Positions 11,014 through 37,040 of a stretch of DNA of 64,000 nt are shown here, piece by piece. The stretch lies in sequence record MT612989.1. The stretch is one strand, 5' to 3'. The position numbers and the translations under genes were made by a program. Position 1 is the first letter of the stretch; each line of letters opens with the position of its first letter. Under the pieces are notes generated by a model. It worked only from the letters and a program-made list of their open reading frames with translations. It ran no database searches and was not told where the DNA came from.

Positions 11014-11091
11014 TAATACTAATCATACTAATACTTCTAATATCACTAAAACCACTAATACTACTAAGATGAGACGGAATTTTTCCGCCTC
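11014..11091 (-). repeat. Six tandem 9-bp TTAG-core repeats plus hairpin (copy 1)
   Basis: Minus strand TTAGTAGTA TTAGTGGTT TTAGTGATA TTAGAAGTA TTAGTATGA TTAGTATTA preceded by GAGGCGGAAAAATTCCGTCTC; second copy at 36963-37040. Confidence 0.85.
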
Positions 11092-11117
11092 TTGGCATTT
11101 CTTCGCTGCGCTAATAC

Positions 11118-11145
11118 AAAAAAGGGTGAGAAATCAATCTCACCC
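11118..11145 (-). terminator. Rho-independent terminator after short tail fibre genes
   Basis: GGGTGAGA/TCTCACCC stem, T tract on minus strand. Confidence 0.8.
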
Positions 11146-11185
11146 GTTTATTAGCATTGACTTTCAAGCTATAATATGCTTGTCT

Positions 11186-12613
11186 TTATGCAGTTCTTTC
11201 CCACATGTAAACAGTATAGTACGGCTGTACGTTATTATGTGGTTGACCACCACCTTCTGGTGATGAGTAATACAAGTAGTTGTCATTATCAGTGCGACCT
11301 GAACCTGGGTTGCTTCTACCATATTCGTATGCAACTCCAAACCCTAGTCCGTTGCCACCGTAAGTCCAACGATCACCCCAACCCGCGTGTTTGTGAGTTG
11401 GCATTGTTTCTTCAGTTAAGATAACTTCGTATTCACCACCTGTTTGTCTTACGTTGAATGTTCTACCACCATGTGTACCTTCAGATACAAGCACGCGACC
11501 TTCTGCAATTCTAGACCATGTTCCGCCGAATAGCGTAGCTGGTGATGTAGATTCAAGTGACATGTAAATAGCACCAACAGGGTACATATTCAACATAGCT
11601 GATGATTCAATCAGACCATTTGTCATTAACTGAGTACCACTTACAGATTGAACATCGTCGATTTTCAATGTACCAGTTACTGTCCCGCCTGAAACCCCAA
11701 TCTTTTCATTATTCAACTTATAACCCATTGCAGCACTTAGTGCTTGAGTCGCGTCGTTTGTTGTTAGATTGTTTGCAAGTTTCGCAACACCAACACGTGA
11801 GCTAGTCGCAGTGAATAAATCTAATGTACCGACTGTGACTGCATGGTCATTAGATGTACGCGCATTTGCAACTGTTGAGTTCGGTAGATAGAAACCTGCC
11901 TTTCTCGTAGTTGTCGCTGTGCGTTCATTGAATCGATACGGTGAAATTGCTAGATTGTTTTCTGATGCTGATGTGCTGTTTACTTCAGTTGCATTTGCTA
12001 ATCGAATCAACCCTTTCGTCGTTTCTGTAGCATCTGATGCGGTAGTATTCGCCCACACGTCAAGCATTTCTTTAACTCTCTGAGGAGTCATCGCTACGCT
12101 ATTAGATAATGTACCAGTCGTCGTTGCTTGTGCATATGTCGCTAGCCGTACAGCACCCGGCGAAGATTCAGTTGCATAGAAACGAGTATTCAACGCGTAG
12201 TTCAATGTTTTAAGCGTGAATGCATGTTTCTGTGCTTCTTCTACTGCGGCTGTCGGGTCAATGTTATCAATCGTGCTGTTTGTAATCAGCTTCACAAAAC
12301 CGTATTGAAGTTCTGTTGCAGTCGCGTGATTTTCCATCCAATAATTTAATGCAGATGGTGTCACCGCGCTTGTGTTATTAAGCTCATCTGCGACTGCTGC
12401 ATTATCACTTAACAATGTAATACCCGCGACAGATGTTGATGCTATAGGGTAATCGGGTAATGGTTGAAGTGCATGAGCTTGTACAAGCTCAAGACACGTT
12501 TGGAGATCGTTATTACCCCCAGTAAGACCATCAAAGGAAGTACCTTCGACTTCAACTGTAACCGTACCCGCATCGTCAATCACGTGATTGAAAATTTGAG
12601 TTCCTTTGCTCAT
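11186..12613 (-). CDS. gp12: Short tail fibre, paralogue 2
   Basis: gp12-like N-terminus, A(T/S)xxxxGxxxL(A/S) repeats, YPVGAIY collar motif, HKH and HNNVQPY tip. Confidence 0.85.
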   Translation of the reverse strand: MSKGTQIFNHVIDDAGTVTVEVEGTSFDGLTGGNNDLQTCLELVQAHALQPLPDYPIASTSVAGITLLSDNAAVADELNNTSAVTPSALNYWMENHATATELQYGFVKLITNSTIDNIDPTAAVEEAQKHAFTLKTLNYALNTRFYATESSPGAVRLATYAQATTTGTLSNSVAMTPQRVKEMLDVWANTTASDATETTKGLIRLANATEVNSTSASENNLAISPYRFNERTATTTRKAGFYLPNSTVANARTSNDHAVTVGTLDLFTATSSRVGVAKLANNLTTNDATQALSAAMGYKLNNEKIGVSGGTVTGTLKIDDVQSVSGTQLMTNGLIESSAMLNMYPVGAIYMSLESTSPATLFGGTWSRIAEGRVLVSEGTHGGRTFNVRQTGGEYEVILTEETMPTHKHAGWGDRWTYGGNGLGFGVAYEYGRSNPGSGRTDNDNYLYYSSPEGGGQPHNNVQPYYTVYMWERTA

Positions 12614-14148
12614 TTAACTCGTCTCCAAATGTAAACTGGGTAGTATGGCATCATATTCTCATGCGGCTCATTACCACCAACTGCTTCGTTGTAATACATG
12701 TAATTATCACGATCAGTAGATTTCGAACCGGGATTATTACGCGAACCTGTTATACCGAATCTCCAGTAACTGACAGTATTATATTCATCACACGTATATG
12801 TTACACCATACGGGCTTCGATGAGTTTCGTAGCGAATACACCCCTCGCGTGAGCCTGTATATGCTTCACCCCAACCTGCGTGTTGGTGTTGTGGTAAATT
12901 ACTCTCGTATAACTGAACACGGTCGATGTCACTGAACGAACCCGCTGCGTAATATCTGCGAGTGAACCCATCATCACCGATACCCTGCCCCATCATAGTT
13001 CGACCTGCTCTCATCTTATACCATACGCCACCGAAAATCTCATTCGGGTCAACTGATGAAGTACAGTGAAAAATACTACCCACAGGGCGCCCTTCGAGAC
13101 CGATCTTCGCGTCTAATTGGTTGTTTGGGAACATTTCTCTCTGCTCTCGCACAGTTGTGTAATATGTTCCACCATAGCTGCTCTGCTTTTGACGAGAAAT
13201 GATGTTTGTGTAAATGTTGTCGCACTTCAAAACACCAGTAATTGTACCACCGTCTGGGCCCAATAGTGTATTCAAATCAACACCAAGTGCAGCACTTGTG
13301 GCTTTCGTTGAGTCGTTTACATACGAGCTTGGTAGTTCAAAGAACCCGTGCTTAGTCGGTGTCGCTATTAGATTGTCAATTGTACCGGGAGTTATAGCAT
13401 ATTCATCTGAATCGCTTGCATTACGGTCATAGTTGTTCTGTGTTAATTTGAATGCACCACGCTTAGATGTCGTCGCTTTAACGTAATTAAGACCTTTAAC
13501 TGTAATTGCAATCGAACCGTCTGATTTATACCCGTCTCGTTCTGCTACAGTACGAAGCACGCCCGTGTATGTTTCTGTCGCTTGAGCCCAAGGGTTTGGT
13601 ATCTCTGCTTTAATTAAGTTCCACGTTCTAAGTGGAGAAATGAATCGATCAGGGTTATATGCTAAAGTTTCGCTTAGATTTGCAAACTCAGCAAAACCTT
13701 GTGATTCGTTTGTTGTGTCATCTGCTAGTGCATTACGAGTCGTCATCATTTCATTTAGACGGCGATATGACAGCAAACGACTTGCATCTGATGACGAATA
13801 TGTTCTTGTCAAATCAGTATTACGCAATTCTTGTAGATTACCTAACTGAGTACTGGTTGCTGGTGACACGAACTGATCAACCCCGTCTAGTGACGCTGGT
13901 GTGATTACAGTTAATAAGTCGTCAAGTGCATTAGCTTCTGTTTGAGTTGCGTACTCAACAATACCAGCCTCAGTCGTTGTCGCATACGGAAGTGACGGAA
14001 GTGGTGCTAATGCGCTATCGTCAAATAGCTCCATTATACTCTGCACATCACCGCCTGACTCAAACGCTGAACCAGGCGATGTGAAGGGCTGTAGGTAAAC
14101 ATATTGCGCTGCATCACTAGCGTGCGTGAATATGTTTGTTCCTGACAT
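12610..14148 (-). CDS. gp12: Short tail fibre, paralogue 1
   Basis: FTHASDAAQYV N-terminus, ATTTEAGIVEYAT repeats, RPVGSIF collar, HQH and HENMMPY tip. Confidence 0.8.
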   Translation of the reverse strand: MSGTNIFTHASDAAQYVYLQPFTSPGSAFESGGDVQSIMELFDDSALAPLPSLPYATTTEAGIVEYATQTEANALDDLLTVITPASLDGVDQFVSPATSTQLGNLQELRNTDLTRTYSSSDASRLLSYRRLNEMMTTRNALADDTTNESQGFAEFANLSETLAYNPDRFISPLRTWNLIKAEIPNPWAQATETYTGVLRTVAERDGYKSDGSIAITVKGLNYVKATTSKRGAFKLTQNNYDRNASDSDEYAITPGTIDNLIATPTKHGFFELPSSYVNDSTKATSAALGVDLNTLLGPDGGTITGVLKCDNIYTNIISRQKQSSYGGTYYTTVREQREMFPNNQLDAKIGLEGRPVGSIFHCTSSVDPNEIFGGVWYKMRAGRTMMGQGIGDDGFTRRYYAAGSFSDIDRVQLYESNLPQHQHAGWGEAYTGSREGCIRYETHRSPYGVTYTCDEYNTVSYWRFGITGSRNNPGSKSTDRDNYMYYNEAVGGNEPHENMMPYYPVYIWRRVK

Positions 14149-14834
14149 TATGCAATCCTTCTGTAATAATACACAGGGTCTGTGAATGTAGTTGAATCAG
14201 TGTGATATAATTCCCACTCGCCGTAACCAAGACTCGTCTGACCGTCTGATGTACCCGTGACAACGCTTTTCGCTTGAATCCCAGTTGGTGCCCCTAAAGG
14301 GTCTAGAATGTCTGCAAACGTCGCTGTGTACGCTGTATTGTGCGGTCTTGAGCTTCGGTGCTTCAAAAGAAACGTATTTGATGGTGGTACATGATCTGTC
14401 GGAACCATGTCAAACAGATCTGATTCTAGTAACGCAGTGAACACTTTCTCTGCAATATCGTTATCAGAATCGCCTACTTCTAGTTGAACAGGAACACCGT
14501 ATAGCGTTATGTATTCAACTCCCGATGTACCGTTGTACGTAATCGTTTCATTAAATTGATTTGTGTTGAATGGGTTCGAAGCGTCAGTTGAAGCAATGAT
14601 TGTCCCTACTGGCATAATTGCTGCCATAGCAAGCTGCATAATCGCAGCTTGCACGTTTGGGTCCCACGCACCGTCTTGAATCTCATCGACTGTCGAATCG
14701 CCCAATACCGCACCGCGGAAATTGAAGCGATCACCCGGGAATAATCCCGAGTCGCTAATCGCATCTTGATCGAAAACTTTCATGCGTGAGTCATTACTCC
14801 ACACTTGTGACGCATGTCTTGCTTTAGTCGTCAT
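14148..14834 (-). CDS. gp11: Baseplate wedge/short-fibre connector
   Basis: Between 10 and 12; MPVGTII collar motif, GYGEWELY, YYYRRIA; ATG overlaps gp10 stop. Confidence 0.8.
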   Translation of the reverse strand: MTTKARHASQVWSNDSRMKVFDQDAISDSGLFPGDRFNFRGAVLGDSTVDEIQDGAWDPNVQAAIMQLAMAAIMPVGTIIASTDASNPFNTNQFNETITYNGTSGVEYITLYGVPVQLEVGDSDNDIAEKVFTALLESDLFDMVPTDHVPPSNTFLLKHRSSRPHNTAYTATFADILDPLGAPTGIQAKSVVTGTSDGQTSLGYGEWELYHTDSTTFTDPVYYYRRIA

Positions 14835-17080
14835 TATGCAGTCCTTATCCAAGTGTATGCAGTGATATATGGCTGAGTTACGTCAACCGCCTGAGCCACC
14901 TGACCATGATTGACCTTGATTGGCTCTTCTTTGTAGTAAGCTAGTGGCGTAGTGTTTTCAGGGTCGCCTAAACAACCATTCAAGTTAATGTCACCGCCTG
15001 AAGTAGCTGAACGTGCAACTAAGCTGTATTGTTCTGTGATGTTGTTAATATCACGCGAAGAATCATTCGCGTAATCTGGGTTTGTTGTACTGATTAGCTC
15101 AGGGATATTCTCTTGAGTAAGAGTCACACCAATTGAACCACCCGTACCACCTGCTTGAACGATATTTTCATTGTTATTGTTTCGGTGGAACTTACCGTCG
15201 TCATTTGGGTTCCAACCCACGACTGTACGCCCCTCTGCATATCGAACCCATGTACCAAAGCCCATGTAATCGGCTGGGTTATTCGGGTTGTTTGCATTTG
15301 TGTATACCGAACCAATAGGGAAGATACTTTCAAACAGTGATGTCAGCGTACCGCCCGGTGCAAACGTCTCAGGGTCTGGCAGAACTTCAGTTACTGCCGC
15401 TGATGGGTTTTGCGGGTCGGTGTACATGATCTTATTTGAGCGTCGTACGTCTGCCCAGTCGTCACGTGAAACGAAAATCTCACGGGTTCTTTGTTGCAAG
15501 TTATCGTCGCCGTCATCCCACGTAAGCAATGTACCTATCACGTTGTCATACCAACGAACTGTTACAATGTCGCTATCGATTAACGGGTCAGCGAAAACAA
15601 TCGTATTCCAACGACCTTCCGAGTCTTGAATATAATCGTAATCATACTCACCGCCTGCTAGACTATCACCATTACCTGCTGTATTCGACTTGGTTAACTG
15701 AGAACCATTGACTAATACTTCTAGTGTTTCGGTGTTAAACTGCGTATAATCAGGAAGACCGAAATCACTCAACGTGATTTGCATGTCAGGTACGAAATCT
15801 TTACGTACGATTTGTCCCGGTGATTCGTCTACCGCGTAGTTGTTTTGGTCGATTACTTTAATTGATTTTAAAACGTAGCTACTACGGAAGCTCGACACGT
15901 CACTCAAGTATGTAATAAACGCAATTGGGTCAGCGTCATTTGCAGCCAAACGCAAACGAATCGTTCTACCGTCAAGCGGAGCTAGATCATCGTTTGTCAA
16001 CTGTCTCCAACGAGAATCAGCCGTTAGATCTGTATATCCCGATGCTGATGTATGTGAAATCAAACATTCAAATGTCTGAGAGTAACCATTGTGGTCTTGA
16101 GTTACGATATCACCAACTGCATATGCAGTACTACCCGCGTGGTCTACATACTCTGGAAAATCTGCGAATTCAGCCCATTTAGACTCTTCCCATGCGCCGA
16201 TGCTGTTGTGTTCTTCTAGACATTGCCAGATGCGGTCATCACGACCTGTAACAGCGTCACCTCGTACTAAATCACCAACGTGATATGTTTCTGGGTTGTT
16301 TGATACCCATGCTTCAACAGTGTGAAGCGGGATTGAACCATAGTCGCTGAAGTCGCTAAGTTCGTCACCGAAGTATAACAAGTTACCACGACGATACACT
16401 TCTACCGCAGCTTGATTGTATAACCCGCCATTTAATTCAAGTGATACGTTGAAGTCACGCTGATCTTGTCGTGCGATGATTGCTCGACGTAGAACACTAG
16501 GGATGTCACCGAATGTCAAACCGTTTACGTATTTCTGTGCAACATATTCCCAATGACGTGGTGGGGTGAATACAAGCTCAAGATCTTGATATGCATTCCC
16601 GAATTCCGCGCCAGAACCTAAGTCGTTTTGAGTTGAACCTGCGACACGTTTTATCGAGTCTTTAGGGTCTGGGTATACTGTTACAAGCTGCTTAGACCAT
16701 GTGCCTTTAACGTCACGTAAACGAATCGCTTTACCGTAGTCTGCTTCTTCAACACCACTCGGTAGATATACATCAACTGGACCCAGTGACGTATCGATAG
16801 TCCATGATTCACCAAAACTTACGCGCAATTCAGGTCCCTGACCATCGCCGTTCTCGTCGAAATACAGTTCAGCGTTAGCAGGGTTGTACGATGTATCACC
16901 GTTTAGATATGTAGATGCAAATTTCCAATTGCGCCAAGCACCGGCAGCATATAATCTGCTACCGTCGCCTAATTGACTGTATATTTCGTCGAAGTTGTCA
17001 CGGGTCTTAATGCCACCTACTCTTAGGTAATCACCAGTACCGTCATCAACAATTTGTCCGACGTTGATCGTCTGTTTCAT
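14834..17080 (-). CDS. gp10: Baseplate wedge subunit and tail pin
   Basis: MKQTINVGQIVDDGTGDYLRVGG, FPIGSVYTNANNPNNPADYMGFGTW, QPYITAYTWIRTA. Confidence 0.93.
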   Translation of the reverse strand: MKQTINVGQIVDDGTGDYLRVGGIKTRDNFDEIYSQLGDGSRLYAAGAWRNWKFASTYLNGDTSYNPANAELYFDENGDGQGPELRVSFGESWTIDTSLGPVDVYLPSGVEEADYGKAIRLRDVKGTWSKQLVTVYPDPKDSIKRVAGSTQNDLGSGAEFGNAYQDLELVFTPPRHWEYVAQKYVNGLTFGDIPSVLRRAIIARQDQRDFNVSLELNGGLYNQAAVEVYRRGNLLYFGDELSDFSDYGSIPLHTVEAWVSNNPETYHVGDLVRGDAVTGRDDRIWQCLEEHNSIGAWEESKWAEFADFPEYVDHAGSTAYAVGDIVTQDHNGYSQTFECLISHTSASGYTDLTADSRWRQLTNDDLAPLDGRTIRLRLAANDADPIAFITYLSDVSSFRSSYVLKSIKVIDQNNYAVDESPGQIVRKDFVPDMQITLSDFGLPDYTQFNTETLEVLVNGSQLTKSNTAGNGDSLAGGEYDYDYIQDSEGRWNTIVFADPLIDSDIVTVRWYDNVIGTLLTWDDGDDNLQQRTREIFVSRDDWADVRRSNKIMYTDPQNPSAAVTEVLPDPETFAPGGTLTSLFESIFPIGSVYTNANNPNNPADYMGFGTWVRYAEGRTVVGWNPNDDGKFHRNNNNENIVQAGGTGGSIGVTLTQENIPELISTTNPDYANDSSRDINNITEQYSLVARSATSGGDINLNGCLGDPENTTPLAYYKEEPIKVNHGQVAQAVDVTQPYITAYTWIRTA

Positions 17081-17089
17081 TATTGTCCC

Positions 17090-18046
17090 TTACGATAGTC
17101 TGATTGTTTCGATAGATTTGATAGCAATTGAAACATTGTCGTCGTTTGATGTAATATCAAGAACGATGTTGCCAGCGTCAACTCGCGGTTCAATCAGAAT
17201 CAAGTTACCAAAATCTTTGTCTGTATTGATTACTGAGTATTCATCAATATAAACGTCTGTTATGTTATTTAGCAGCAACAATTCCGATGACATGCGTCGA
17301 GTAACAGCACCACCCTGTAGAGGGTCGCTATTCTCTGCATAAACCATCAATTTACATGCTGCATACGATTGAATATCGAATAGCGGCATCGTAACTGTCA
17401 CTGTGTCTGGAATTGAGTAAATCGTGTCATTAACTGGCGCACCGAAGTCACCGGCAATCGGGTTGATTTTGACACCCCACTGCGGCGTTCCTGCTAATCC
17501 CGTACCATCGTCAATGACAGTACATATGATATGACAGCGATTTGTACGAACAATTTGAGTTCCGTTAAGTTCTGGGGCACCTACAATAGCGTCTCCTGAT
17601 GATGGTGCTAGTACAATCGGGTTTGTATCTAATGTTGCTGTTGTGTTCTGAAACTCTATTCGCTCACCGCGTTTTGCCATCCCTGCTGTCGTGCCAATCT
17701 TCGGTAAATTCAACGTCATCGATGCACCGCCGCCTAATGATGACGTGTCGATGTCATATTTACCACCTGTTACGATTGATGTCAGTAAGTTTGTATTGTT
17801 CGGACCACCCGAACCGCCCGCAGTAGAACTCGGTGGAATTCTCTGCCAATAACCACCTGCATGAGGTCTAGGTGCGATGTCATTATATGCAGGGATATAG
17901 TTTTCACCTGCATCGGTTAGCTCAAAGTCTGCATTAATATGGTAAAACTCATCTGAGTTATCACGCAGCTTATTACCACCATTGTGAATTGTATCACCAG
18001 TACCGACCGAACCCGCCGTACCAGTTTCTAATCTATTACGTCCCAT
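17090..18046 (-). CDS. gp9: Baseplate wedge tail-fibre connector
   Basis: GTGDTIHNGGNKL N-terminus, PHAGGYWQ; between 8 and 10. Confidence 0.85.
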   Translation of the reverse strand: MGRNRLETGTAGSVGTGDTIHNGGNKLRDNSDEFYHINADFELTDAGENYIPAYNDIAPRPHAGGYWQRIPPSSTAGGSGGPNNTNLLTSIVTGGKYDIDTSSLGGGASMTLNLPKIGTTAGMAKRGERIEFQNTTATLDTNPIVLAPSSGDAIVGAPELNGTQIVRTNRCHIICTVIDDGTGLAGTPQWGVKINPIAGDFGAPVNDTIYSIPDTVTVTMPLFDIQSYAACKLMVYAENSDPLQGGAVTRRMSSELLLLNNITDVYIDEYSVINTDKDFGNLILIEPRVDAGNIVLDITSNDDNVSIAIKSIETIRLS

Positions 18047-18060
18047 TTCTTTCTCCAAGG

Positions 18061-18078
18061 AAGGCGCATTTGCGCCTT
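18061..18078. terminator. Hairpin between genes 8 and 9
   Basis: AAGGCGC ATTT GCGCCTT. Confidence 0.5.
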
Positions 18079-18099
18079 ATGAGTTATTTACTGTATTTA

Positions 18100-19131: not shown

Positions 19132-22100
19132 CTATTTGTTTTTGAGTCGGCGTTACTGGGTCATATGGGTTGCCAACGTTGTCTTTCAATCTGTAATCAG
19201 AATCTTCGTACATATCTGAAATACTCGTCGATGCTGCTGACCAGTCAAACATAAATGCAGGAGTTCGTTCGTATGCTGTCATTCCCCAATATACCGACCC
19301 GTTTGCGTCTGCTGATTGAACTTTCGCAGTTGGGTTGTAATTGGGATTCAGAACACGTTTCTTACCGCCCCATTCATCGTTGATATCACCCGTGTCTGTT
19401 TCTATATATCGTTGCTCGTCGATAGCTGAATACTCATCTAAAGCAATCACACGATCATTAGCCCAGTAGTTGTTGTAGTCGATGATTGTAATACCCTGTG
19501 TATTAGTCAATCGATCTTGAATCGCATGATCAAGCGGGTCTTCTAGTGCTAACGGGTGTGGCTTCAATTGAAGTTCACCGAACGAGTTGTAAATTCTATC
19601 GTCGTTACCATCAAGCAATGAAGTTTCTTCAGTGAAGTTATTCCCTATACCGTTGTCATAGCGAATCAATCTGTATGAATCTACAATCGTTTCGTGGTGG
19701 TTGACTGAGATACCGTGATTGATCAATACTGTCAGCAACGTAATACCTAAGAACCCAAACCCAATTGGGTGTACAAATCGAATTACATCATCTTTGTACT
19801 GACTAAGCTGAATCTCAGAACGAATCTTCATAACGTAGTATGATTTGCTTCGATCAAGAAATTCATTTGAATCGTAGTCGATTCGTTCACCTTGTACGCG
19901 AGTAATCGCAGTTGCAGTGAATTCCAGACCGTCGATTTCTAACGTGTCGCCGATGTTCAACTCACCGATTAAGTTGTTCAAAGTCAATTTCCAGTAACGT
20001 TTACCTTCAATGTAATGACGGTCAACATATGTCACGTCTGCGTTGCCTGTATCTGAATAAATTCTACGACCTACCACATCATCGGTTACGTCATTTGAGT
20101 TAACAACGATTGAATATTCAAACGTGTTAAGCGATTCTATTTCAACTTCAACATCTTCGTTGTACAGTAACTTGAACAAGAACTTGTATGAGTCTAAAAT
20201 ACCTTTAGTGCTGTAAAAATCTGCACGTCGTGCCAAGAAAAATTTAACAACTGCATCACGTTTCTCTGGCTCTAGAATACGATTTCGCTCGTATACTAAT
20301 TTGTGTAGATACTCAGTGTAATGGTCGTCAAGTGGGTTTTTGCTGTTAAGCAAGTTATACACGTTATTATAAGCCGTACCATCACCTTTACTGATGAAAT
20401 CTAAGTAGTGCTTTGCAAAACTCTTGTAAAACCCGTCTGCATCGAGATAATTCTCTGGCATCATCTTGTAAATCAATGGTGTCAGAGTCGGGTCGAGCAT
20501 ACTTGTTGGGTCTTCTTCAGGCGGCTCGATAATTACTGGAGAATAATTAGACAAACTAGCCGTGATTACACGACGCTCAGGCGACCAGCGAATTGGCGCT
20601 GTGATATCAACGCGGTATGGAAACTTGTAGTAACCTATTACCTTGTTGTCGTTCGCGCTGTGAATGATCGCACCTGCTGCATAACCATTAAACCCGAAAA
20701 TCGATAGATTAGGAGCTTCCAGTTTGTATTCACCTTCGTCAAATGTCTCTTTCCATTTATATTCGTCTAGATCTTCAAAATCGCTTCTGAAAATTGACTC
20801 TTTCTTGTAGTACATGATTTCATTTGCCCAAGATTTCCAATCACGTGTTTCAGCACGCTGCATCCAGTTGAAATGCGCGGATCCGTAATAATCTTGCGGC
20901 TTGTAGTACCAATCATCACCGTCTTTCGTCGCGATAATCTGTGTCATCGGCTTAACGTATGTTGTAAAGAACGGTTTAGTGAACATACGAACAGCTTCGT
21001 CAACTTCATCGTTGTCTGAAACTAGATACGGGTCATCTATTGTACCGTAGTTATCACCCGCAGTTGAGTGGAAATTACCAGGTGCACCGCTAGACTCTTG
21101 ACGATTGTCGTAAGCTGGGTTGCCTTCTTCACCGTAGTTCTTTGTTAGATCGTGACCTACAATCAAATGAGTGTTGTCACGTGAAATAACTGAACGTTCG
21201 TTTAGAAGTTCGCGTTCTTCTTCAATGTTTCCGTATACACGTTCCCATGTCAAGCCAGTGTAACCAATAACGATACCATCTCTCAATGTCGCTGTGCGAT
21301 TTAGTCGATAAACACCGCGAATCTCATTCGGGTCAGATGTACCGATTCGTTTACCGTTCTCGTCATGCTCCCACTCACCTATGACTAGCGCGAACATATT
21401 TCCGTCTTGATAATCGAGACCTTGCTCTGGGTCGTCGAAGTACTGAATTTTCTTAACACACACATCTGCTGTGTTTTCATCAAAATTAGGTCGACTCGCG
21501 TCGTTTTTCACAATCTTATCTTCAAAGTAAACAGGTTCGTTGTTTAATTCGCCCGTTGTTTCGAAAATACGTTCGCCATATAGTTCTGATAATACGTTAT
21601 CGAAAATTCGCGGGATTCTGTTGTTATGCCACACGTAGGTGTTTGCGTATGTTACAACGGACATTACATCATCAACGCCGAAAGCGTCTGCTTTGTTACG
21701 CACTTGTGGTGGTAATATAGCCAAATCTTTGAAACGCTCAACATCGAACCCAAACCCTAAGTCGAAGTCTAGTTTATCGAACGTCAAATCAACCGATGCA
21801 TGTGAATATTCAAGCCCATTATCGTGCGAGTAATCAACGTCATTCGATTGTACGCCTTGAATAAGGTAATCATACCCTAGTAGGTAACTAAATGCGTTAG
21901 ACTGCTTACAGATGCAATCATAGACTGGGTTCCCTAGTCTTGAGTTCGTTGCTTTATATGTCTGCCATGTTCTACCGCCGTCGTTAGACACTTTACAAAC
22001 TTGTTGCCAGCGTTCGAACGCATATATAACATCGTCTATAACAACAGGGATTACGCGATCAACGTTCTGACATACAGTTGGGACTTTGCCATAATTTGCA

Positions 22101-25115: not shown

Positions 25116-25123
25116 GAAAAGTG

Positions 25124-26102: not shown

Positions 26103-26111
26103 TAACCACAA

Positions 26112-26137: not shown

Positions 26138-26151
26138 AAAAAGGAAACGTA

Positions 26152-26794: not shown

Positions 26795-27279
26795 TAGTTA
26801 CCTCCTGCTGCTATATAATCTCTAAGTTGCTGCGCCCATGTATCCCACTTACCTTTAACGTTCTGAGTAAATGTTTCAACGAGCTGCCGCTCTTCAATTA
26901 CTCCCGGTACAAGCGGGTCTTCGTATTCGTAATCAACTGTAACTGTATATGTGTAGTCAGTTGATAACACGCTCGGCGCTTCGAATCTATACACGTGACC
27001 ATGTTCAGGGTTGTTCGGTAGATCGCTAAATCTACTCACTTCATGATAGCTATTGTCTCGTGTATCTCTGTATTTCAGACCACTAGGTCCCAGATCAAAC
27101 GAATCTTGATACTGACCGTAATATCTTGCGCCTGAGACATTAATACCCGCATTCGCTCGATGATCAGTTATTGATATCTGAACAAGTGTCTCACCTTCGT
27201 CCATAACCGCGGAGAACGTCACATCGACGTTCTCCGCTTCTGTAATGATCGGTAAAGTGATTGGTGTAATACTAGCCAT
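26794..27279 (-). CDS. gp5.1: gp5.1-like baseplate protein
   Basis: Position after gene 5; LPIITEAE, WDTWAQQLRDYI ending. Confidence 0.7.
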   Translation of the reverse strand: MASITPITLPIITEAENVDVTFSAVMDEGETLVQISITDHRANAGINVSGARYYGQYQDSFDLGPSGLKYRDTRDNSYHEVSRFSDLPNNPEHGHVYRFEAPSVLSTDYTYTVTVDYEYEDPLVPGVIEERQLVETFTQNVKGKWDTWAQQLRDYIAAGGN

Positions 27280-27283
27280 TCAA

Positions 27284-29772: not shown

Positions 29773-29773
29773 G

Positions 29774-30352
29774 TTATACCCCTGCTAATTTCATAAACGT
29801 GCTGATGTATGTACTAATATCGTCACGCGAAAGAATGTTAATCACGCGATTCGTTTCATTCTTATTGAACTCAAACTCATCAACTGATACTGGAATCATA
29901 ACGCCGTGATACAACAGTTCTCGAAAATCTTCCTGACCTTCTTCAGGTACATTATTTTCCCAGTCGAACTTGTTATACCAATTACGCGGGTTTTCAGGGT
30001 CTTCAATCATATCAAACCACCAACGACCTTGTTCATCGACGTGATGATGAACTTGCTCATTCCCACCAATATACTGATAACGATAAATAGCATTCTCAGC
30101 TACAGATTCATTGGGCTGAACCCAATCATAAAACGGGTCAACGCGCTGATTGAGAAGTAATATCAACCAATACAACGACGTGTCACCGTACAATTCATAT
30201 GCAATTTGTTCAGGGCGATAATCGCCCCTTATTTTATACTGAATCGTCGTAAACGACGGGATGATCTGCTTATGATAATAATTCAAATTCTTGAATATGT
30301 CCGCAGTTTCAACCCCTTGATAATCAGTCTTTTCAAATATCGAAAAAATCAT
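29774..30352 (-). CDS. gp53: Baseplate wedge subunit
   Basis: RPEQIAYELYGDTSLYWLILLLN, DPFYDW. Confidence 0.9.
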   Translation of the reverse strand: MIFSIFEKTDYQGVETADIFKNLNYYHKQIIPSFTTIQYKIRGDYRPEQIAYELYGDTSLYWLILLLNQRVDPFYDWVQPNESVAENAIYRYQYIGGNEQVHHHVDEQGRWWFDMIEDPENPRNWYNKFDWENNVPEEGQEDFRELLYHGVMIPVSVDEFEFNKNETNRVINILSRDDISTYISTFMKLAGV

Positions 30353-31485
30353 TTAATCAATCCCTCAATATCACCAAAGAACGAACCAGAGTTTGTATTA
30401 CTACCACTAGCCGTTTTCGTTCCACTGTCATAACCTCGAACATTACTGTTAAGGTCGCGTTGATACATAGCACGATCAAGTGGGATAAGTTCGCTAAATG
30501 TAATCTCAAGCTCAATACCCGCTGGGTCACCAGCCGTACCTCTAAATGTGCGCCAGTACTGATCAGGTGTACGATTCAACTTCACAGACGTGATACCCGC
30601 TGGACCGAAAATAAAGCGAGGTGTGTATCGCGTCGCGTCTGTGTCTGACACTTCTTCAATCATCCATACAGGCGGAGTTTTCAATAAAGTCGCGTATTTC
30701 GCAAAACCTGCTGCAAAACCTGAACCTAAATTTGCTGTACCTGTATCTAATAACTGCGAATCAATCTGACCTTTCACTGGCAACGATAGCCCATAGAACG
30801 TCTTTATAATCTCTGCAACTACTTTCAATTCATCTAACGACTTAGGGTGGAATTGATATACCATTGTTTGTGTACGCTGCGCTGTACCTTTATACGCAGT
30901 TACAGTCACGTTGTCTGTTACGACACTGCTGTTCTTCTCCAACTGTCCTGCTGCATTCGATTGAATGAATGAACGTTTAATCTGAGCCAGTGTTGCGCCT
31001 GCTGCTGTCGCGACTGCTCGTTTACCGCGATCAACACCCTCAGACACTGTATCTGAGCCCGCTGCTGAAGCTGCACTAGCAAGAAAGTCATTTAACACTG
31101 AAGTCGGTGTTTTATCATATTCGTGAGACACTTCTTCAACGATATTAGGCGCGTAAAGTGCAAGTGTAGCCTTCAGTTCGCTAGGAACTTCACCAGATTG
31201 TTCATTTTCAGTTTGCGCGGCAGTAAACGAACTACGCATGTCCGTATAGTGTTGTTTTGTTGTGTGTGCCAAGTCATACGCTCTAAAAATAAAGAAATTC
31301 GGGTGTCCAGACTCAGCCCCTAAATTAAGCGGGTATGTCAATGCTACATTATTCGAGTCACGACCGAGTTTAGTAACATCTTCACCTGTCGAAAGCTCTT
31401 GCGTAGTACTTTGCACTCCTCCTGATATTGTTTCTACTAGAGTGCTACTTTTTGCAGCGATTGTACTAGTAAGATTCATTTTCAT
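30349..31485 (-). CDS. gp48: Baseplate tail-tube cap
   Basis: LTYPL, FHPKSLDELKVVAEIIKTF, FGPAGITSV, LEITFSE. Confidence 0.8.
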   Translation of the reverse strand: MKMNLTSTIAAKSSTLVETISGGVQSTTQELSTGEDVTKLGRDSNNVALTYPLNLGAESGHPNFFIFRAYDLAHTTKQHYTDMRSSFTAAQTENEQSGEVPSELKATLALYAPNIVEEVSHEYDKTPTSVLNDFLASAASAAGSDTVSEGVDRGKRAVATAAGATLAQIKRSFIQSNAAGQLEKNSSVVTDNVTVTAYKGTAQRTQTMVYQFHPKSLDELKVVAEIIKTFYGLSLPVKGQIDSQLLDTGTANLGSGFAAGFAKYATLLKTPPVWMIEEVSDTDATRYTPRFIFGPAGITSVKLNRTPDQYWRTFRGTAGDPAGIELEITFSELIPLDRAMYQRDLNSNVRGYDSGTKTASGSNTNSGSFFGDIEGLIK

Positions 31486-31512
31486 GATCTCCTTTTTAAA
31501 AATATATATCTG

Positions 31513-31534
31513 TATTTAGATGCGATACTAAATA
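31513..31534. promoter_or_regulatory. Back-to-back late-type promoters (TCTAAATA minus, ACTAAATA plus)
   Basis: TAAATA cores between divergent genes 48 and 4. Confidence 0.65.
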
Positions 31535-31552
31535 TATGAAAGGAGGCGCTAC

Positions 31553-32008
31553 ATGGCATATTCTGGAAAATTTGTTCCGTCGAACAAGTCAAAATACAAA
31601 GGCAATTATCAAAAGATTGAGTATAGAAGCTCATGGGAATTGTCGTTTATGCGTTGGTGTGACAACAACCCACACGTAGTTCGCTGGAATTCTGAAGAGA
31701 TTGTAATCCCATATGTTAGTTCGGCTGACGGCGGGAAAAAACGTAGATATTTTATGGACTTTTACGTGAAGTTCAGCGATGGGCGCGAATTCATATTTGA
31801 AATTAAACCGCACAAAGAAACGATGCCGCCTGAGAAGCCACAGAGGCTTACTGAAAAGGCTAAGAAACGTCTTTTAAAAGAAGTATATACGTTTCAAGTG
31901 AATCAAGATAAATGGGCTGCTGCGATTAAATTCGCAAAGCAGAAAGGTTGGCAATTCAAAGTCTTGACTGAACACGGACTGAGAAAATTGATAGGACTGA
32001 GAGTGTAA
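31553..32008 (+). CDS. gp4: Head completion protein (TnsA-like nuclease fold)
   Basis: MAYSGKFVP, YRSSWE, WNSEEIVIPY, YFMDF, EIKP, NQDKWAAA. Confidence 0.93.
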   Translation: MAYSGKFVPSNKSKYKGNYQKIEYRSSWELSFMRWCDNNPHVVRWNSEEIVIPYVSSADGGKKRRYFMDFYVKFSDGREFIFEIKPHKETMPPEKPQRLTEKAKKRLLKEVYTFQVNQDKWAAAIKFAKQKGWQFKVLTEHGLRKLIGLRV

Positions 32009-32009
32009 T

Positions 32010-32606
32010 ATGGCTAGACCAGAACGAGCAAAGAAGAAAAAGGAAAGTTTGCTTGATAGCTTCAAAGCTCAAACGCACGAGCTTGGTCGTCAACCAATCG
32101 CGAAGAATCAACGCAAATCATTAGCATGGTTCAAAAAGCGTGTTCATGATGCAATACGTAGTCGAAAAGTACAGCGACCACACAAAGGCAACATGTATGT
32201 ATTCGCATATGATGCTAAACACAAAGACAAACTTCCGTATTGGGATAAATTCCCGTGTATTATCTGTCTCGGGGTCGAAAAGGGATATATGTTAGGCTTG
32301 AACTTGCACTACATCCCACCGAAAGATCGCGAGAAGTTTTTAACAATTTTACTACGATACGCAACTACAAAAACAGTAAGTAACACAACTCGACTATCGG
32401 TTGATTGGGGTCGAGTGAAAAACATCAAGTTCAGTAAACATATGGTTAAATTGTACATTCTAAAGCGAATTAAAGGTTCACTTGAAGAAGTCAAACCACA
32501 TGATTGGTACAATGTTATTCACATGCCACTACAGCAATTCGTTGCTAAAAATGGTCGTAACATTTCTGCTGTTCGTGCGTACGATGATCGTTATAGAAGG
32601 AGATAA
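32010..32606 (+). CDS. gp2: DNA end protector
   Basis: YDAKHKDKLPYWDKFP, GLNLHYIPP. Confidence 0.93.
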   Translation: MARPERAKKKKESLLDSFKAQTHELGRQPIAKNQRKSLAWFKKRVHDAIRSRKVQRPHKGNMYVFAYDAKHKDKLPYWDKFPCIICLGVEKGYMLGLNLHYIPPKDREKFLTILLRYATTKTVSNTTRLSVDWGRVKNIKFSKHMVKLYILKRIKGSLEEVKPHDWYNVIHMPLQQFVAKNGRNISAVRAYDDRYRRR

Positions 32607-32609
32607 CGA

Positions 32610-33356
32610 ATGGCAATCGGTATTGACGTTAAAAAGTTCTTATCTCAGATCAATAAGAACGATTTAGCAAGACAAAACTTGTATGCGGTGCGTTTTGCAT
32701 CGCTGCAAGATACAGCAAAGCAGTTAATGAACACTGGTGAAACGTTCTCGAATGCTGCATCGACTAGAGTAAACGGTATCGGGGTTAAAGATGCATTAGC
32801 CTCGACTGCTGCGTTATTCGGTAGTGGGTTTGAATTCGAGCGAAACATCGGGATGATGGTTAAATCAGTAAATATACCTGGGTCATCATACGAAACAGAT
32901 ATTGATAGATCGAGAAGACGTCCGCATCATGTAATCAAAACGAAAACTGATGAAACGGTAACGATGTCGCTGTATCTTTCACCCTCACACCCTGAGCGTA
33001 AAATGCTATTAGGTTGGTTCAAACAGATTTATTCAAACGATTCTGCGCAAGTCGGGTTCTTCTCGAATTACGCACGCACTATCGAGATTTACACGTACGA
33101 CCGCAACGCGAACATGGTTACTATGACCAGTTTAAAAAATGCGTTTCCTATTCGAGTCGGTGGAGTTCAGTTGGGCTATGAAAATAGCAATGCAGTTGCC
33201 GAATTCGAGGTTGAATTTGTTTACGAAAGTGCAACGTACATGACTGAAGATTTATCTAGCACAATCGCAGACACGTTAGATATAACACAGAATTTCGAAA
33301 AAACATATAACAGCATTTACAATACTGCGGCAGAAACATTCCCAAACTTATTTTAA
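32610..33356 (+). CDS. gp54: Baseplate tail-tube initiator
   Basis: DLARQNLYAVRF, MVKSVNIPG, tube-like fold motifs, FEVEFVY. Confidence 0.75.
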   Translation: MAIGIDVKKFLSQINKNDLARQNLYAVRFASLQDTAKQLMNTGETFSNAASTRVNGIGVKDALASTAALFGSGFEFERNIGMMVKSVNIPGSSYETDIDRSRRRPHHVIKTKTDETVTMSLYLSPSHPERKMLLGWFKQIYSNDSAQVGFFSNYARTIEIYTYDRNANMVTMTSLKNAFPIRVGGVQLGYENSNAVAEFEVEFVYESATYMTEDLSSTIADTLDITQNFEKTYNSIYNTAAETFPNLF

Positions 33357-33368
33357 GGCAAAAATATC

Positions 33369-34217
33369 ATGACAAAACCATTTGATTTGAGCGTACTTGC
33401 TGCGCCTCAATATACTGTAAAACTACCATCTACTGGCGAAGAGATCAAGTTACGTGCCATGCTTGCAAAAGAGCATAAAACACTGTTGATCGCTAACGAA
33501 TCAGATGAAAAGGTTGATGCAATCGAGCAATGTCTTGAAAACTGTATTGTTTCAGACATCAAGATGGAAGACCTAACGGTTGGTGATGCTGAATACTTGT
33601 TCATGCACATGTATATGAACAGCAATGGCGTAACTGAAATTCAAGCGGAATACAACTGCTGTGCAGATAAGCCAGAAGAAGAACTCAAACAGCTAGACGC
33701 ACAAGAAGAAGCTGAACTTGAGAAATCTGCCGATGACTTGTTCGCAGAGATTGTTAATCAATCAAACGAAGAGGCAATCGAAGCAGTATTCGCACCTGAC
33801 AAGCGTCTATGCGGTGAACGAATCACGGCAAATATAGACCTAAACGCTGCGTTTGTGCCTGCATTCACTGGTGAAGATACAGTTCGTGTTAACAAACAAG
33901 TATTAATCAAACTCCAACACCCGAATATTCGCGTGTATGAGAACAACGACCCTAACACTCCTGAAGGTCTGTTCAATATTGCTGTTGAATCGATCAAAGA
34001 AGTTCACGTTGGTGATACTGTGTACAGCAAAGAAGAGCTTGCCGCACAAGGTCAGTTGATCAATATCATGGGTGAACTAGACACTGCTGCATTCAAGAAA
34101 GTTCAAACTTTCGTCGATGCAGTGCCGCGAATCACCACTTATGTTGACGTTAAATGTCCTAAGTGTGGTAACGCAGAGAAAGTAACTCTACGAGGCATCG
34201 AAGATTTTTTCGTATAA
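33369..34217 (+). CDS. gp26: Baseplate hub subunit
   Basis: KLPSTGEEIKLRAMLAKEHKTLL, CPKCG, LRGIEDFF. Confidence 0.85.
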   Translation: MTKPFDLSVLAAPQYTVKLPSTGEEIKLRAMLAKEHKTLLIANESDEKVDAIEQCLENCIVSDIKMEDLTVGDAEYLFMHMYMNSNGVTEIQAEYNCCADKPEEELKQLDAQEEAELEKSADDLFAEIVNQSNEEAIEAVFAPDKRLCGERITANIDLNAAFVPAFTGEDTVRVNKQVLIKLQHPNIRVYENNDPNTPEGLFNIAVESIKEVHVGDTVYSKEELAAQGQLINIMGELDTAAFKKVQTFVDAVPRITTYVDVKCPKCGNAEKVTLRGIEDFFV

Positions 34218-34384
34218 TGCTCGGTAGATACTCACTCGAAGAGTATTACAAAGAAAACTTTGCCATGATCACTCATGGCAATTTTTCGCTATACGATTTA
34301 GAGACAATGGTTCTATTCGAGCGCGAAATCTATGCCGCACAGCTTATACATCACATCAAAGAAAAGAATAAGGAACAACAATAA
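34217..34384 (+). CDS. gp51: Baseplate hub assembly protein (55 aa, not in ORF track)
   Basis: Manual translation MLGRYSLEEYYKENFAMITHGNFSLYDLETMVLFEREIYAAQL; coupled to 26 and 29. Confidence 0.8.
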   Translation: MLGRYSLEEYYKENFAMITHGNFSLYDLETMVLFEREIYAAQLIHHIKEKNKEQQ

Positions 34385-36357
34385 TGGCGGCTGATGAAAA
34401 AAAGATGAATGAGATAATCGGAAGATTAGATCATTTGATTCTCCAACAAGAAGACCGACCTGAAGTTTACACGATGCAGCGTGTGGCTCGTCATATCAAC
34501 AACATTGATATAACAACGTCAACGATGCTCGAAACAATGCAATCGGTCTTCAAAACTAACGAAAAGGCAGTTGCACAACAGAAAAATCTATTTCAGCGCG
34601 TCATTGAAAACTTCGAACAGACATCAAACAGAGTCCGCGCTTCGATTATATCACTAACTGATATCATCAAAACTACTTTAGATTTCAAAGGTCACTTGTC
34701 TAGAATTGATCGCGGTATTCAAGAGATGCGATTGACTGCAAAAATGCAGTTTGCTCGTATGCAGGAGGGGTTTACTCGATGGTTTGAACGACTGATCTTC
34801 AGAGTCAATGACATGAAGCGAATAATCGGGCTTCAGAAGACGACTGCCGACGATTTAAATAGTTTCTTGACGAACGGTGCGGGTAACAACTCTCCGCTTA
34901 CTGTGGGCTTTATAAGCGCGTTATACAAGAAGATATTTGCATATCAAGTCGTTACTGATACCCGTGCTCGTAAAACTGAGCAATTTCGTTACAAAGAAAA
35001 CATGAAAGTGCAACGCAATCAAGCGAGTGATCTACGTCGAATCGCGAATCACCTAACAGGCGAAAAGCTAGGATGGATTGCCAAGTTGTTTAGACTAGTT
35101 GGTGTAGGTCTAGTAATGCTAGGCGGTCAATTAGTAACGTTTTCAACATCTATGGCAGCGGCTGCATCAACGGCTAGTAAATTTGGTAAACTAGGTCGAA
35201 TCGCTTCAAGCATTCTCTTAGGGTTTGGTAAGTTTAGCCAAGGGACGGGTAAAATCGTTCAAGAACTTGCAACTGACATGAGAGGCACGGTCAAAAAATG
35301 GATGTGGGCAGTTGTTCGTCAAACATTCTTAGGACTAGGTCGTATGATTTCAATCATGTTAAACCCAATCGCATTAGCTGGTATGCTTGCGGGTTATGGC
35401 ATTTACAAGTTATTTGAAGAAGAAATCGACCGAATCTTCGTTGCATTGAAGAGTATTTTCAGCGACCCCGAAAAACGGGAAATGTTGTTTAATATAGTGT
35501 CGAACTGGTTTAGCGATATGGTTCGAGGTATCGGAGAATGGTTCGGTATTGTCAGTGACAATATTCAAGAAGCAGTACCCGAAGGTGCAGTTGATGGAAT
35601 TGTATCTGGCTTCAATGCAGTGACATCTTTCGTTAAGAAAGCTTTCCGAATGTACGTTAATGCAATTAACAAAATCATAGCTGGTTGGTTATCAATTCCT
35701 GATTCGTTTAGATTGCTTATGTTAGCAATAGATGACTTGATGTTAAACGTTAAATCATTTGTAGTTGATGCATTAAATGCATTACCAGACTGGATGCGTT
35801 CAGAAGGCATGGACAAGTTCATAGCAGATGCTGACATTGAAGGTAAAAGAGCGAAACTAGATGCTGACAAAGCTGAAGTTCGTGAAAGACTCAATGCGCG
35901 TTATCAAACAGACTATCTAGGCAAAGCTGGGGATATGATCGTTGATGGGGCTAAGAATACAGCACAAGCGGTTATAGACGGTGCTAAGAACGCTGCTGAT
36001 GCTATCAAAGACCCTGCTAAGAATTTAGCAACGTCTGCCGAATCTCTTGACAAGTTCTTGCAAGCTGAAGTCGAGAAGAAGCAAATAGCAGAAGACGCAA
36101 TTGTAGCGGCTGAACGTCAACGTATGATCAATGAGGGGATCATTAAGCCAATGCAAGAAGTTAAGCGTTCAATCATCTTAGAAGCTGTCGCAGCGCGAGA
36201 AGCAGCATTTCGAGCAGCACAGCAAACGAAAGAGGTTGGAACTAACTTCGTGAACAATGCGGTCAATTCAGTTCAGAATACAACGAACTTCAATAGACCG
36301 TTAAGCGTAAACAGTGAAGCGAAAGTGCCTTCACCAAATAGAAGAACGGTGAATTAA
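34384..36357 (+). CDS. gp29: Probable tail length tape measure / hub protein
   Basis: 657 aa helical with central hydrophobic segments, after gene 51. Confidence 0.65.
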   Translation: MAADEKKMNEIIGRLDHLILQQEDRPEVYTMQRVARHINNIDITTSTMLETMQSVFKTNEKAVAQQKNLFQRVIENFEQTSNRVRASIISLTDIIKTTLDFKGHLSRIDRGIQEMRLTAKMQFARMQEGFTRWFERLIFRVNDMKRIIGLQKTTADDLNSFLTNGAGNNSPLTVGFISALYKKIFAYQVVTDTRARKTEQFRYKENMKVQRNQASDLRRIANHLTGEKLGWIAKLFRLVGVGLVMLGGQLVTFSTSMAAAASTASKFGKLGRIASSILLGFGKFSQGTGKIVQELATDMRGTVKKWMWAVVRQTFLGLGRMISIMLNPIALAGMLAGYGIYKLFEEEIDRIFVALKSIFSDPEKREMLFNIVSNWFSDMVRGIGEWFGIVSDNIQEAVPEGAVDGIVSGFNAVTSFVKKAFRMYVNAINKIIAGWLSIPDSFRLLMLAIDDLMLNVKSFVVDALNALPDWMRSEGMDKFIADADIEGKRAKLDADKAEVRERLNARYQTDYLGKAGDMIVDGAKNTAQAVIDGAKNAADAIKDPAKNLATSAESLDKFLQAEVEKKQIAEDAIVAAERQRMINEGIIKPMQEVKRSIILEAVAAREAAFRAAQQTKEVGTNFVNNAVNSVQNTTNFNRPLSVNSEAKVPSPNRRTVN

Positions 36358-36893
36358 TGAAAAACTTAACGATGAAGAATAATTTCCGAATCGACATCCC
36401 TGATAATAACGCAACTCAAACGTTCCAGTGGCAGATACAAACTGCCACTATCCCGAGTGTTACGATGGAAATTGCAAGCATTACTCGTGGTCCGAAGTAT
36501 GCCAAACTAGCAAATAACCATGTTGCAGGTTCTGGTACATCATATGACGATCTTTCGATTCAATTTCTAGTCGATGAAGAAATGCGGACGTATGCCGAGC
36601 TGTATAGATGGTTGATCACAATGAATAACCCAACAGGTGCTAGTACAAGTGACGGGATTGTTCCAGTTACTATGCTTCTACATGTTCTAGACAACAACAA
36701 AGATAAAATTGTAGCAACATATCGTTTTGTCAATGCATTTCCAAAGTCACTCAGTGCTGTAGAATGGAACTATACTGAATCTGGTGATGTTGAAGTCGTA
36801 ACTTGTGATGTCGAGTTTGAATATTCATATTTTGAAATGATTCATAAAGTCGATGGCAAAGAAGAAGTAATAACACCCTATATGGGTTCATAG
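36357..36893 (+). CDS. gp3: Tail completion/tube terminator
   Basis: ATIPSV, YDDLSIQFLVDEEMRTYAELYRW, LHVLDNNK, FPKSLS. Confidence 0.88.
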   Translation: MKNLTMKNNFRIDIPDNNATQTFQWQIQTATIPSVTMEIASITRGPKYAKLANNHVAGSGTSYDDLSIQFLVDEEMRTYAELYRWLITMNNPTGASTSDGIVPVTMLLHVLDNNKDKIVATYRFVNAFPKSLSAVEWNYTESGDVEVVTCDVEFEYSYFEMIHKVDGKEEVITPYMGS

Positions 36894-36902
36894 AAAGCAA
36901 TT

Positions 36903-36925
36903 AAGCCCCTTACGGGGCTTTTTTT
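36903..36925 (+). terminator. Terminator after gene 3
   Basis: AAGCCCC TTAC GGGGCTT TTTTT. Confidence 0.85.
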
Positions 36926-36962
36926 GTATCTGAATCTAGAGCGAAGCGGCAGAATTTGGTGT

Positions 36963-37040
36963 GAGGCCCAAAAATTGGGCATCATCTTAGTAGTATTAGT
37001 AGTTTTAGTGAAGTTAGAGGTATTAGTAATATTAGAGAAT
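36963..37040 (+). repeat. Hairpin plus six tandem 9-bp TTAG-core repeats (copy 2)
   Basis: GAGGCCCAAAAATTGGGCATC then TTAGTAGTA TTAGTAGTT TTAGTGAAG TTAGAGGTA TTAGTAATA TTAGAGAAT. Confidence 0.85.

Follow-up and report, generated by a model that had tools for sequence, protein, structure and literature searches.

A six-copy palindrome and 9-bp repeat element of KVP40-like Vibrio phages, also carried by a Vibrio chromosomal island: a candidate origin-type unwinding or loading site

Two copies of a short intergenic element, a hairpin followed by an array of 9-bp repeats, are present in the window analysed here (a 64,000-nt stretch of DNA, positions 124001–188000 of Vibrio phage vB_ValM_R11Z, MT612989.1), and raise the question of what such an element does in a phage of this kind. 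Blast comparison of both sites with phage records identifies the source as a KVP40-like phage of the genus Schizotequatrovirus. It is likely that the machinery of the phage itself uses the element, as a DNA site. Of the functions considered, that of a cis-acting origin-type unwinding or loading module of KVP40-like phages is the most likely, and it is proposed tentatively. The meltability of the array, the even spacing of the copies, their orientation, their placement outside transcription units, the capture of the element by an island and the analogy with T4 origins make this the best single reading. The original prediction had suggested either an iteron array (replication origin, packaging or nucleoid site) or a structured RNA; judged from sequence, the first direction is favoured, whereas the second is weak.

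Sequence reading confirmed both copies, designated A and B, on the strands and at the positions predicted. Each comprises a 21-nt hairpin, an ATC linker and six TTAG-core 9-mers, and is preceded by an intrinsic-terminator-like hairpin with a T run. Copy A lies between a gp12-like short tail fibre gene and the fibritin gene (wac), and copy B between a gp3-like tail completion gene and a gene 1-like deoxynucleoside monophosphate (dNMP) kinase gene. The absence of C from the element strand of the 54-nt arrays also holds for both; it is lineage-dependent, since in other lineages C is found at positions 3, 7, 8 and 9 of the unit. When up to three mismatches were allowed, a 25-nt core pattern matched the window at these two sites only; in 100 shuffles it gave no match. 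The hairpin and array belong to the unit as described, but similarity reaches further upstream, to an AGCGAAG(CG) motif, giving a unit of about 125–135 nt. The terminators lie outside the unit, since their sequences differ between copies. The GG/CC exchange between the two hairpins does affect both arms; it had been taken as two compensatory swaps, but these are not independent, being one change common to related copies and thus approximately one event. The count of two copies was likewise correct but incomplete, as A and B are two of six in the genome, with the other four outside the window; a search of relatives revealed the family in every one of the approximately 50 that have been sequenced.

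Full-genome scans cover three phages: R11Z was scanned for TTAG at a 9-nt period, and the divergent phage 1.081.O and K566 were searched with a profile built from the six R11Z copies. In the 246.8-kb R11Z genome, the arrays start at 19730(-), 64526(-), 107187(+), 135067(-), 160987(+) and 210436(-). The same six junctions are occupied in the other two phages, with six copies in K566 and seven, including one tandem pair, in 1.081.O. The approximately 50 Vibrio phage records show 4–6 blast places each, and nt-1 (Mylasvirus) has six, one of which was read at the gp3/gene 1 junction. All 19 copies in the three scanned genomes are co-oriented with the flanking genes. The six sites are 26–56 kb apart and are more evenly spaced than expected by chance (against six random points on a circle, P = 0.004–0.009 for the minimum gap and P = 0.003–0.008 for the spread, measured as the coefficient of variation). 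A generic scan of viral contigs for TTAG at a 9-nt period returned only unrelated tandem repeats, mostly in giant viruses, and the exact core pattern had no match in 185,579 bacterial species genomes. The tandem pair in 1.081.O consists of two whole units (L140 7108–7400, minus strand) with no terminator between them.

On the gene-sense strand the unit has five parts: AGCGAAGCG; 7–14 variable bases; a short, GC-clamped palindrome (conserved core CGGAA-AAA-TTCCG or CCCAA-AAA-TTGGG); an almost invariant linker; and five to seven 9-bp units. The consensus of 158 repeat units is TTAG-W-R-R-T-A at exactly 9 bp. The most conserved block, of about 35 nt, has invariant spacing. The 9-mer AGCGAAGCG has three occurrences in the R11Z genome, all inside elements and on the element strand, and the palindrome box with its linker is found nowhere beyond the six elements, which rules out the palindrome box as a general promoter motif. 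The TTAG core is not absolute, since in K566 all six copies contain at least two TTCG units (units 3–4 in five copies and units 4–5 in the uvsY copy). By nearest-neighbour energies, the six R11Z arrays fall in the lowest 0.01–0.6% of all 54-bp genome windows for duplex stability; array A is among the least stable of these windows (top 0.01%) and array B is in the lowest 0.05%.

Identity is 0.86 among copies within a genome, and 0.78 between genomes at the same junction, the value for different junctions also being 0.78. The greater likeness within genomes than at a shared junction points to concerted evolution, presumably by gene conversion, with the positions fixed. The same pattern would be expected of an intergenic repeat, selfish or neutral, whose copies gene conversion keeps similar in a highly recombinogenic phage; it would perhaps be no more than a PeSL-like recombination module, with the island copy as a recombination scar. 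The tandem duplication in 1.081.O and the expansion of one island array could be explained in the same way, and PeSL-type composite motifs have been described in nt-1 and KVP40 (PMC4122927, from its text). Nevertheless, a selfish repeat is improbable: the same six junctions are used in the three scanned Schizotequatrovirus lineages and nt-1 also has six blast places, the element is in conserved core regions rather than hyperplastic ones, its even spacing and invariant block of about 35 nt would not be expected, and it is kept at the same place in two island types in several Vibrio species.

The PeSL/PmSL motifs of T4-like phages, as presented in the text of PMC4122927, do resemble the element in combining an intergenic stem-loop, an AT-rich stretch and a promoter, in occurring in nt-1 and KVP40 and in being linked to recombination; here too, a terminator and a promoter flank the element. 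The motifs consist of a stem-loop with an early or Mot-type promoter and a Shine–Dalgarno sequence, and are enriched beside indels in hyperplastic regions (Comeau, Arbiol and Krisch 2014). However, according to the same text, PeSLs are many, loosely conserved and located in hyperplastic regions, whereas the element has six sharply conserved copies at core-gene junctions, with a conserved block as an additional component. The text of that paper, as distinct from its figures, does not mention a 9-mer array. The element may overlap the PeSL/PmSL motifs described there for nt-1.

Several small hypothetical proteins are annotated over the element (ORF204 of nt-1, L126 1464–1604, K566 genes 0030, 0095, 0175, 0299 and 0421, and the D48x records). 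These annotations imply that the element encodes a small protein; one frame does give a conserved-looking Leu/Val-rich peptide, and in three contexts an upstream ORF runs into the element in that frame. However, most copies lack a start codon and have in-frame stops just upstream or inside. In addition, the spacer to AGCGAAGCG varies by non-multiples of three, TTA is never exchanged for a synonymous Leu codon, variation is not concentrated at third positions, and the palindrome swap would cause radical residue changes. A protein product is thus extremely improbable, so that the coding reading was rejected, and the annotated small ORFs are almost certainly spurious.

An intrinsic terminator is situated just before the element at five of the six junctions in K566 and 1.081.O and at four of six in R11Z, while an early sigma-70-type promoter is found 0–30 nt past the array at four of six junctions in all three scanned genomes; at the wac junction, a late TATAAATA box is present further downstream. 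In most cases the element therefore has a terminator on one side and the next promoter on the other, and belongs to neither transcription unit. This argues against an RNA role and for DNA, because a cis-acting RNA would be expected inside a transcription unit and not between two. Junction 6 is different in arrangement: in all three lineages the upstream gene has its stop codon within the palindrome or immediately ahead of it, and the Shine–Dalgarno sequence of the next gene is formed by the final repeats.

An RNA element would consist of a 5' hairpin and an unstructured U/A/G-rich tract, which in read-through or polycistronic transcripts could either be a tandem cassette for processing or decay by an RNase E-type endonuclease or offer a platform to an RNA-binding protein. 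Co-orientation with transcription in 19 of 19 copies and the location of junction 6 inside an mRNA are consistent with this, as is the rarity of C on the sense strand. RNase E prefers RN|WUU, and positions 7, 9, 1 and 2 of the unit, which are R (85%), W (84%), U and U, resemble this preference. In RNAalifold analysis of 27 copies, the short hairpin alone was kept and the array was unpaired, and the stem on the element strand tolerates G-U. Over these copies the inner 5-bp helix pairs in 95% and the outer helix in 79%, with one outer pair broken in 12 of 27; two pairs covary, both in the same three related copies. A long G-U-rich fold-back of the array in R11Z (z about -3) was ruled out as it is not kept in 1.081.O (z +0.5 and -1.4), K566 or the consensus. 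Against Rfam 15, tRNAs alone exceeded the gathering threshold in the window, with no family for the element, and around copy B matches with E up to 10 were chance matches on the terminator only. The structured RNA of the original prediction is therefore doubtful: the conserved fold amounts to a 5-bp hairpin, most junctions follow an intrinsic terminator and precede the next promoter, two units have become TTCG in all K566 copies without compensation, and of six island copies, which stand between divergent promoters, three have a broken hairpin arm. A known RNA parallel is the translational operator of T4 gene 32, in which a folded element is also followed by unstructured A/U-rich short repeats (UUAAA-type), with possible cooperative single-strand binding; that operator, however, is a single site in one mRNA leader, whereas copies of the element are mostly outside transcription units and not at gene 32.

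The flanking promoters allow a further explanation, in which a protein-bound array acts on transcription as a control module, as a promoter dependent on a phage factor, or as an insulator or roadblock, for example for RNA polymerase or the late-promoter sliding clamp. The early promoter at four of six junctions and the late promoter at wac would then have a direct meaning, co-orientation with downstream genes would follow naturally, the invariant spacing in the 35-nt block is promoter-like, and the island copies occupy a control region between divergent late boxes. KVP40 and nt-1 possess asiA but have no recognisable motA (PMC2988021). An unknown activator with its own box is therefore conceivable, and a transcriptional role is kept as the main rival. 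It is rather unlikely, however, since the next promoter lies at a variable distance (anything from overlap to about 85 nt) and is absent from junction 6. In addition, the box is nowhere else in the genome though a middle-promoter motif should be frequent, the even genome spacing is left unexplained and the element itself showed no sigma-70 promoter.

A pattern scan of metagenomes identified six loci with the element, two of which are KVP40-like junctions and four of which have another context. In the longest locus, L144, only the element (about 90 nt) is common with any phage record at the DNA level, with 94% identity to the D48x phages; element identity between islands and phages is 83–94%. 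L144 encodes Thoeris ThsA and ThsB and a type II restriction-modification pair. A look-up of ThsB revealed the same island in assembled Vibrio genomes, by name mostly V. parahaemolyticus, but also V. diabolicus, V. alginolyticus, V. vulnificus and V. cyclitrophicus; the region had no match in plasmids. The island is about 18.6 kb long (L152 1548–20061; also L153, L154, L155, L144 and L143), starts with a large serine recombinase gene and is situated between an LpxL-type acyltransferase gene and a split M32 carboxypeptidase gene, into which it is inserted. It encodes a full-length homologue of the gp45 sliding clamp of the phage (44% identity, E 4e-65), and three further small proteins with R11Z homologues. 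A search for the island clamp in species genomes gave no match. In three or four intergenic positions of the island there are TATAAATA boxes aimed at the adjacent operons.

Within the island, the element is positioned in a non-coding control region of 1.1–1.6 kb between divergent late-promoter boxes, and has kept this location in two island types and several Vibrio species. The control region also contains an iteron cluster, the sequence of which differs between island types, whereas the element is constant. In three of the six island copies the 5' hairpin arm is non-pairing. One copy (L155 12637–12820, minus strand) has 14 units, resulting from triplication of a 36-nt block, so the array is able to expand by unequal recombination. 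By its sequence, the island has the appearance of a satellite, or of a defence island triggered by infection, that is tuned to KVP40-like phages. Neither the island nor the element was found described in the searchable literature, which did not extend to the KVP40 genome paper.

Since satellites normally copy cis sites that are read by helper machinery, the element is probably such a helper-read site. Captured satellite cis sites (P4 cos, the pac sites of chromosomal islands and the PLE origin) are comparable in that a helper cis element is found in an island together with helper-like genes and defence cargo; they differ in that the helper here would be a T4-type jumbo phage, and the island has a clamp homologue and late boxes. 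Satellites typically carry the pac or cos site of the helper, and terminase sites are often short repeats. The element could accordingly be a packaging signal, at which the small terminase binds the repeats for concatemer cutting and headful packaging from six sites, the island having copied it in order to be packaged; the expandable array of 14 units, and the linearisation of the record of phage Va3 inside the array of copy 1, possibly at read ends, would agree with this. A packaging role is, however, quite unlikely. All six copies lie away from the terminase genes, by 5.4 kb in the nearest case, a pac site would not need strict gene orientation, and T4-type packaging is regarded as sequence-independent. 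Of six record starts located by reading or annotation, one is in an element, and the Va3 break is within 5 nt of the divergence of copies 1 and 5, as for an assembly break at a repeat. The Va3 record itself (MK568540.2; L156 1–60 and L157 1440–1500) is circular and is linearised in repeat 4 of copy 1. The assembly was probably broken here by the repeat, a physical end being less likely; in practical terms, the element can break assemblies.

The preferred reading, an origin-type unwinding or loading site, can be set out as follows. A phage factor would recognise the palindrome (CGGAA-AAA-TTCCG), the invariant linker and the first repeats, with AGCGAAGCG upstream. The adjacent, easily melted array of 45–63 bp, made up of TTAG-W-R-R-T-A units, would then open, and the replisome, with the sliding clamp, would enter in the direction in which the local genes are transcribed, as happens at ori(uvsY) and ori(34) of T4. 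Protein binding to the element, its melting in vivo and the start of replication there are what we infer. T4 uses at least five dispersed origins, each needing a DNA unwinding element, and these are directional, with RNA priming leading-strand synthesis one way (PMC3016281). Their discovery came through small fragments with which plasmids could replicate autonomously during infection (PMC3016281), so that capture of a helper origin would be of advantage to a parasite of a T4-type phage.

The likeness to T4 ori(uvsY)/oriF and ori(34)/oriG lies in the several dispersed sites, the directionality with transcription and the presence of a meltable stretch beside a conserved control sequence; a low-stability stretch of about 50 bp, as in the R-loop-primed origins of the T4 type, is found in all six arrays. 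One copy is also just upstream of uvsY, the gene for which T4 ori(uvsY) is named (PMC3016281). There are clear differences. T4 origins have no common motif, whereas the six sites here are one repeat family, and the unwinding stretch is itself the 9-bp repeat array. In addition, T4 oriF and oriG need a MotA-dependent promoter upstream of the unwinding element, whereas these phages are without a recognisable motA and no promoter was detected in the element. On comparison with the T4 origin positions in the review (PMC3016281), a supposed match of copy 2 with oriC was not kept.

Evenly spaced short direct repeats in a non-coding stretch are also a feature of T4 oriE, the iterons of which are of unproven function (PMC3016281), and of iteron origins of the plasmid and lambda type. 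The fixed-spacing tandem repeats of such origins are present here (5–7 units, and 14 in one island), but a helical-turn period and a nearby initiator are not. The period is 9 bp, compared with 12 nt in T4 and approximately 11 or 22 bp in plasmids. Each genome has six copies instead of one, no adjacent initiator gene was found, and the repeats are themselves the AT-rich part. The bacterial DnaA-trio element consists of TAG/TAA trinucleotide repeats beside a GC cluster and a DnaA box. A DnaA-trio unwinding element was considered, as TAG recurs every 9 nt after a GC-rich palindrome, but was rejected because there is no DnaA-box-like 9-mer in the conserved block. By analogy, the T4 origins and the T4 oriE iterons appear to be the closest functional analogues, membership in either being unproven.

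Several points weigh against an origin-type site. Most duplex iterons keep phase with the helix, which a period of 9 bp does not, and there is no initiator-like gene among the neighbours (UvsY, glutaredoxin, a SprT-like protein, Alc and unknowns). No canonical sigma-70 promoter was found in the element or firing into the array; a TAnnnT hexamer (TAGTAT) in repeat 1, 11 nt past the palindrome, is on reading alone a possible -10 sequence, with the palindrome centred near -30. The copy at junction 6 is squeezed between two cistrons and supplies a Shine–Dalgarno sequence, and so is certainly transcribed there. The islands have iteron clusters of their own and may not need a helper origin, and satellites more often capture packaging sites. 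Finally, the statistics for spacing, orientation and synteny stem from one shared ancestry, the three syntenic genomes not being independent replicates.

The origins of T4-type phages are poorly defined, and a conserved, meltable six-copy module is a directly testable candidate in phages that grow on the laboratory host Vibrio natriegens. The phage-like clamp and late boxes of the island point to a satellite of a new kind, or to a defence island triggered by infection, directed at jumbo T4-type phages, and the island offers a natural experiment as to the cis site that a parasite of this sort requires. A bolder and rather unlikely reading is that the element is the handle for a new Vibrio satellite family that exploits KVP40-like jumbo phages and, in the phage, a dedicated, sequence-defined entry site for the replisome and clamp. 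In that case, no T4-type phage would have shown a repeat-family origin, or a replication-independent clamp-loading 'enhancer', before, and replication, late transcription and perhaps packaging would be coupled at six evenly spaced points.

Table 1. Components of copies A and B, with neighbouring signals, and the six junctions occupied by the element (positions are those of the window)
Feature	Position	Strand	Remarks
Copy A terminator: intrinsic-terminator-like hairpin and T run, end of gp12-like gene	11124..11145	-	Upstream flank
Copy A AGCGAAG motif, degenerate form of the 9-mer AGCGAAGCG	11101..11107	-	Part of repeat unit
Copy A palindrome/hairpin: GAGGCGG, loop AAAAATT, CCGTCTC	11071..11091	-	
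Copy A linker ATC (11070-11068) and six 9-bp TTAG-core units (11067-11014)	11014..11070	-	C-free
T4-type late promoter box TATAAATA	10928..10935	-	About 80 nt downstream of array A, upstream of wac start 10886
Copy B terminator: intrinsic-terminator-like hairpin and T run after gp3-like gene	36903..36920	+	Upstream flank
Copy B AGCGAAGCG motif	36940..36948	+	
Copy B palindrome/hairpin: GAGGCCC, loop AAAAATT, GGGCATC	36963..36983	+	GG/CC-swap variant
Copy B linker ATC (36984-36986) and six 9-bp units (36987-37040)	36984..37040	+	C-free
Sigma-70-type early promoter of dNMP kinase gene (TTTAGA, 17 nt, TATAAT)	37059..37087	+	19 nt past array B
Junction: hypothetical gene adjoining Dam-like methylase			
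Junction: SprT-like gene to glutaredoxin			
Junction: gene 35-like hinge connector to uvsY			Copy in uvsY promoter region, just upstream of uvsY
Junction: gp12 to wac			
Junction: gp3 to gene 1			Tandem pair in 1.081.O
Junction 6: hypothetical gene to lipoprotein gene			

Some further features of the island and of the window were recorded. The island iterons (L144 3086–3223; L152 12200–12340) are an 11-mer present seven times in one type and ATGTCGAAA-like units present about ten times in another, in both cases just upstream of an operon driven by a late box; this suggests that they are exchangeable replicon modules. At another site in the island (L152 13148–13235, plus strand), a TATAAATA box is followed by an inverted repeat with 18-nt arms, a strong terminator about 60 nt on, and L154 has two tandem versions of this arrangement (12924 and 13000). 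It is possible that a small RNA of about 85 nt is made from this site only under phage late transcription.

A 77-aa island protein (L152 5096–5329, plus strand) resembles the N-terminal part of R11Z_261 (window 63383–63958, plus strand), with 30–34% identity. R11Z_261 is a membrane protein encoded after the tail-fibre genes, in the position of the T4 holin, and the island protein could be a lysis-timing modulator. In addition, an unannotated 68-aa ORF is present just outside the window (R11Z 189294–189500; L004 39294–39500, minus strand), between genes _264 and _265 and near asiA. It has a ribbon-helix-helix-like pattern and no Pfam match; 1.081.O conserves it, and one island type encodes a homologue of 60 aa. 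The ORF product was considered as a binder of the element and set aside, being absent from the second island type that keeps the element and without a Pfam match, and is only a lead.

The window also contains a large tRNA cluster at 39682–47440, with 28 genes according to ARAGORN and 31 according to Rfam. Three Rfam matches of 113–122 nt (39682–39794, 39805–39926 and 41486–41598) were not called by ARAGORN, and these long tRNA matches may carry insertions.

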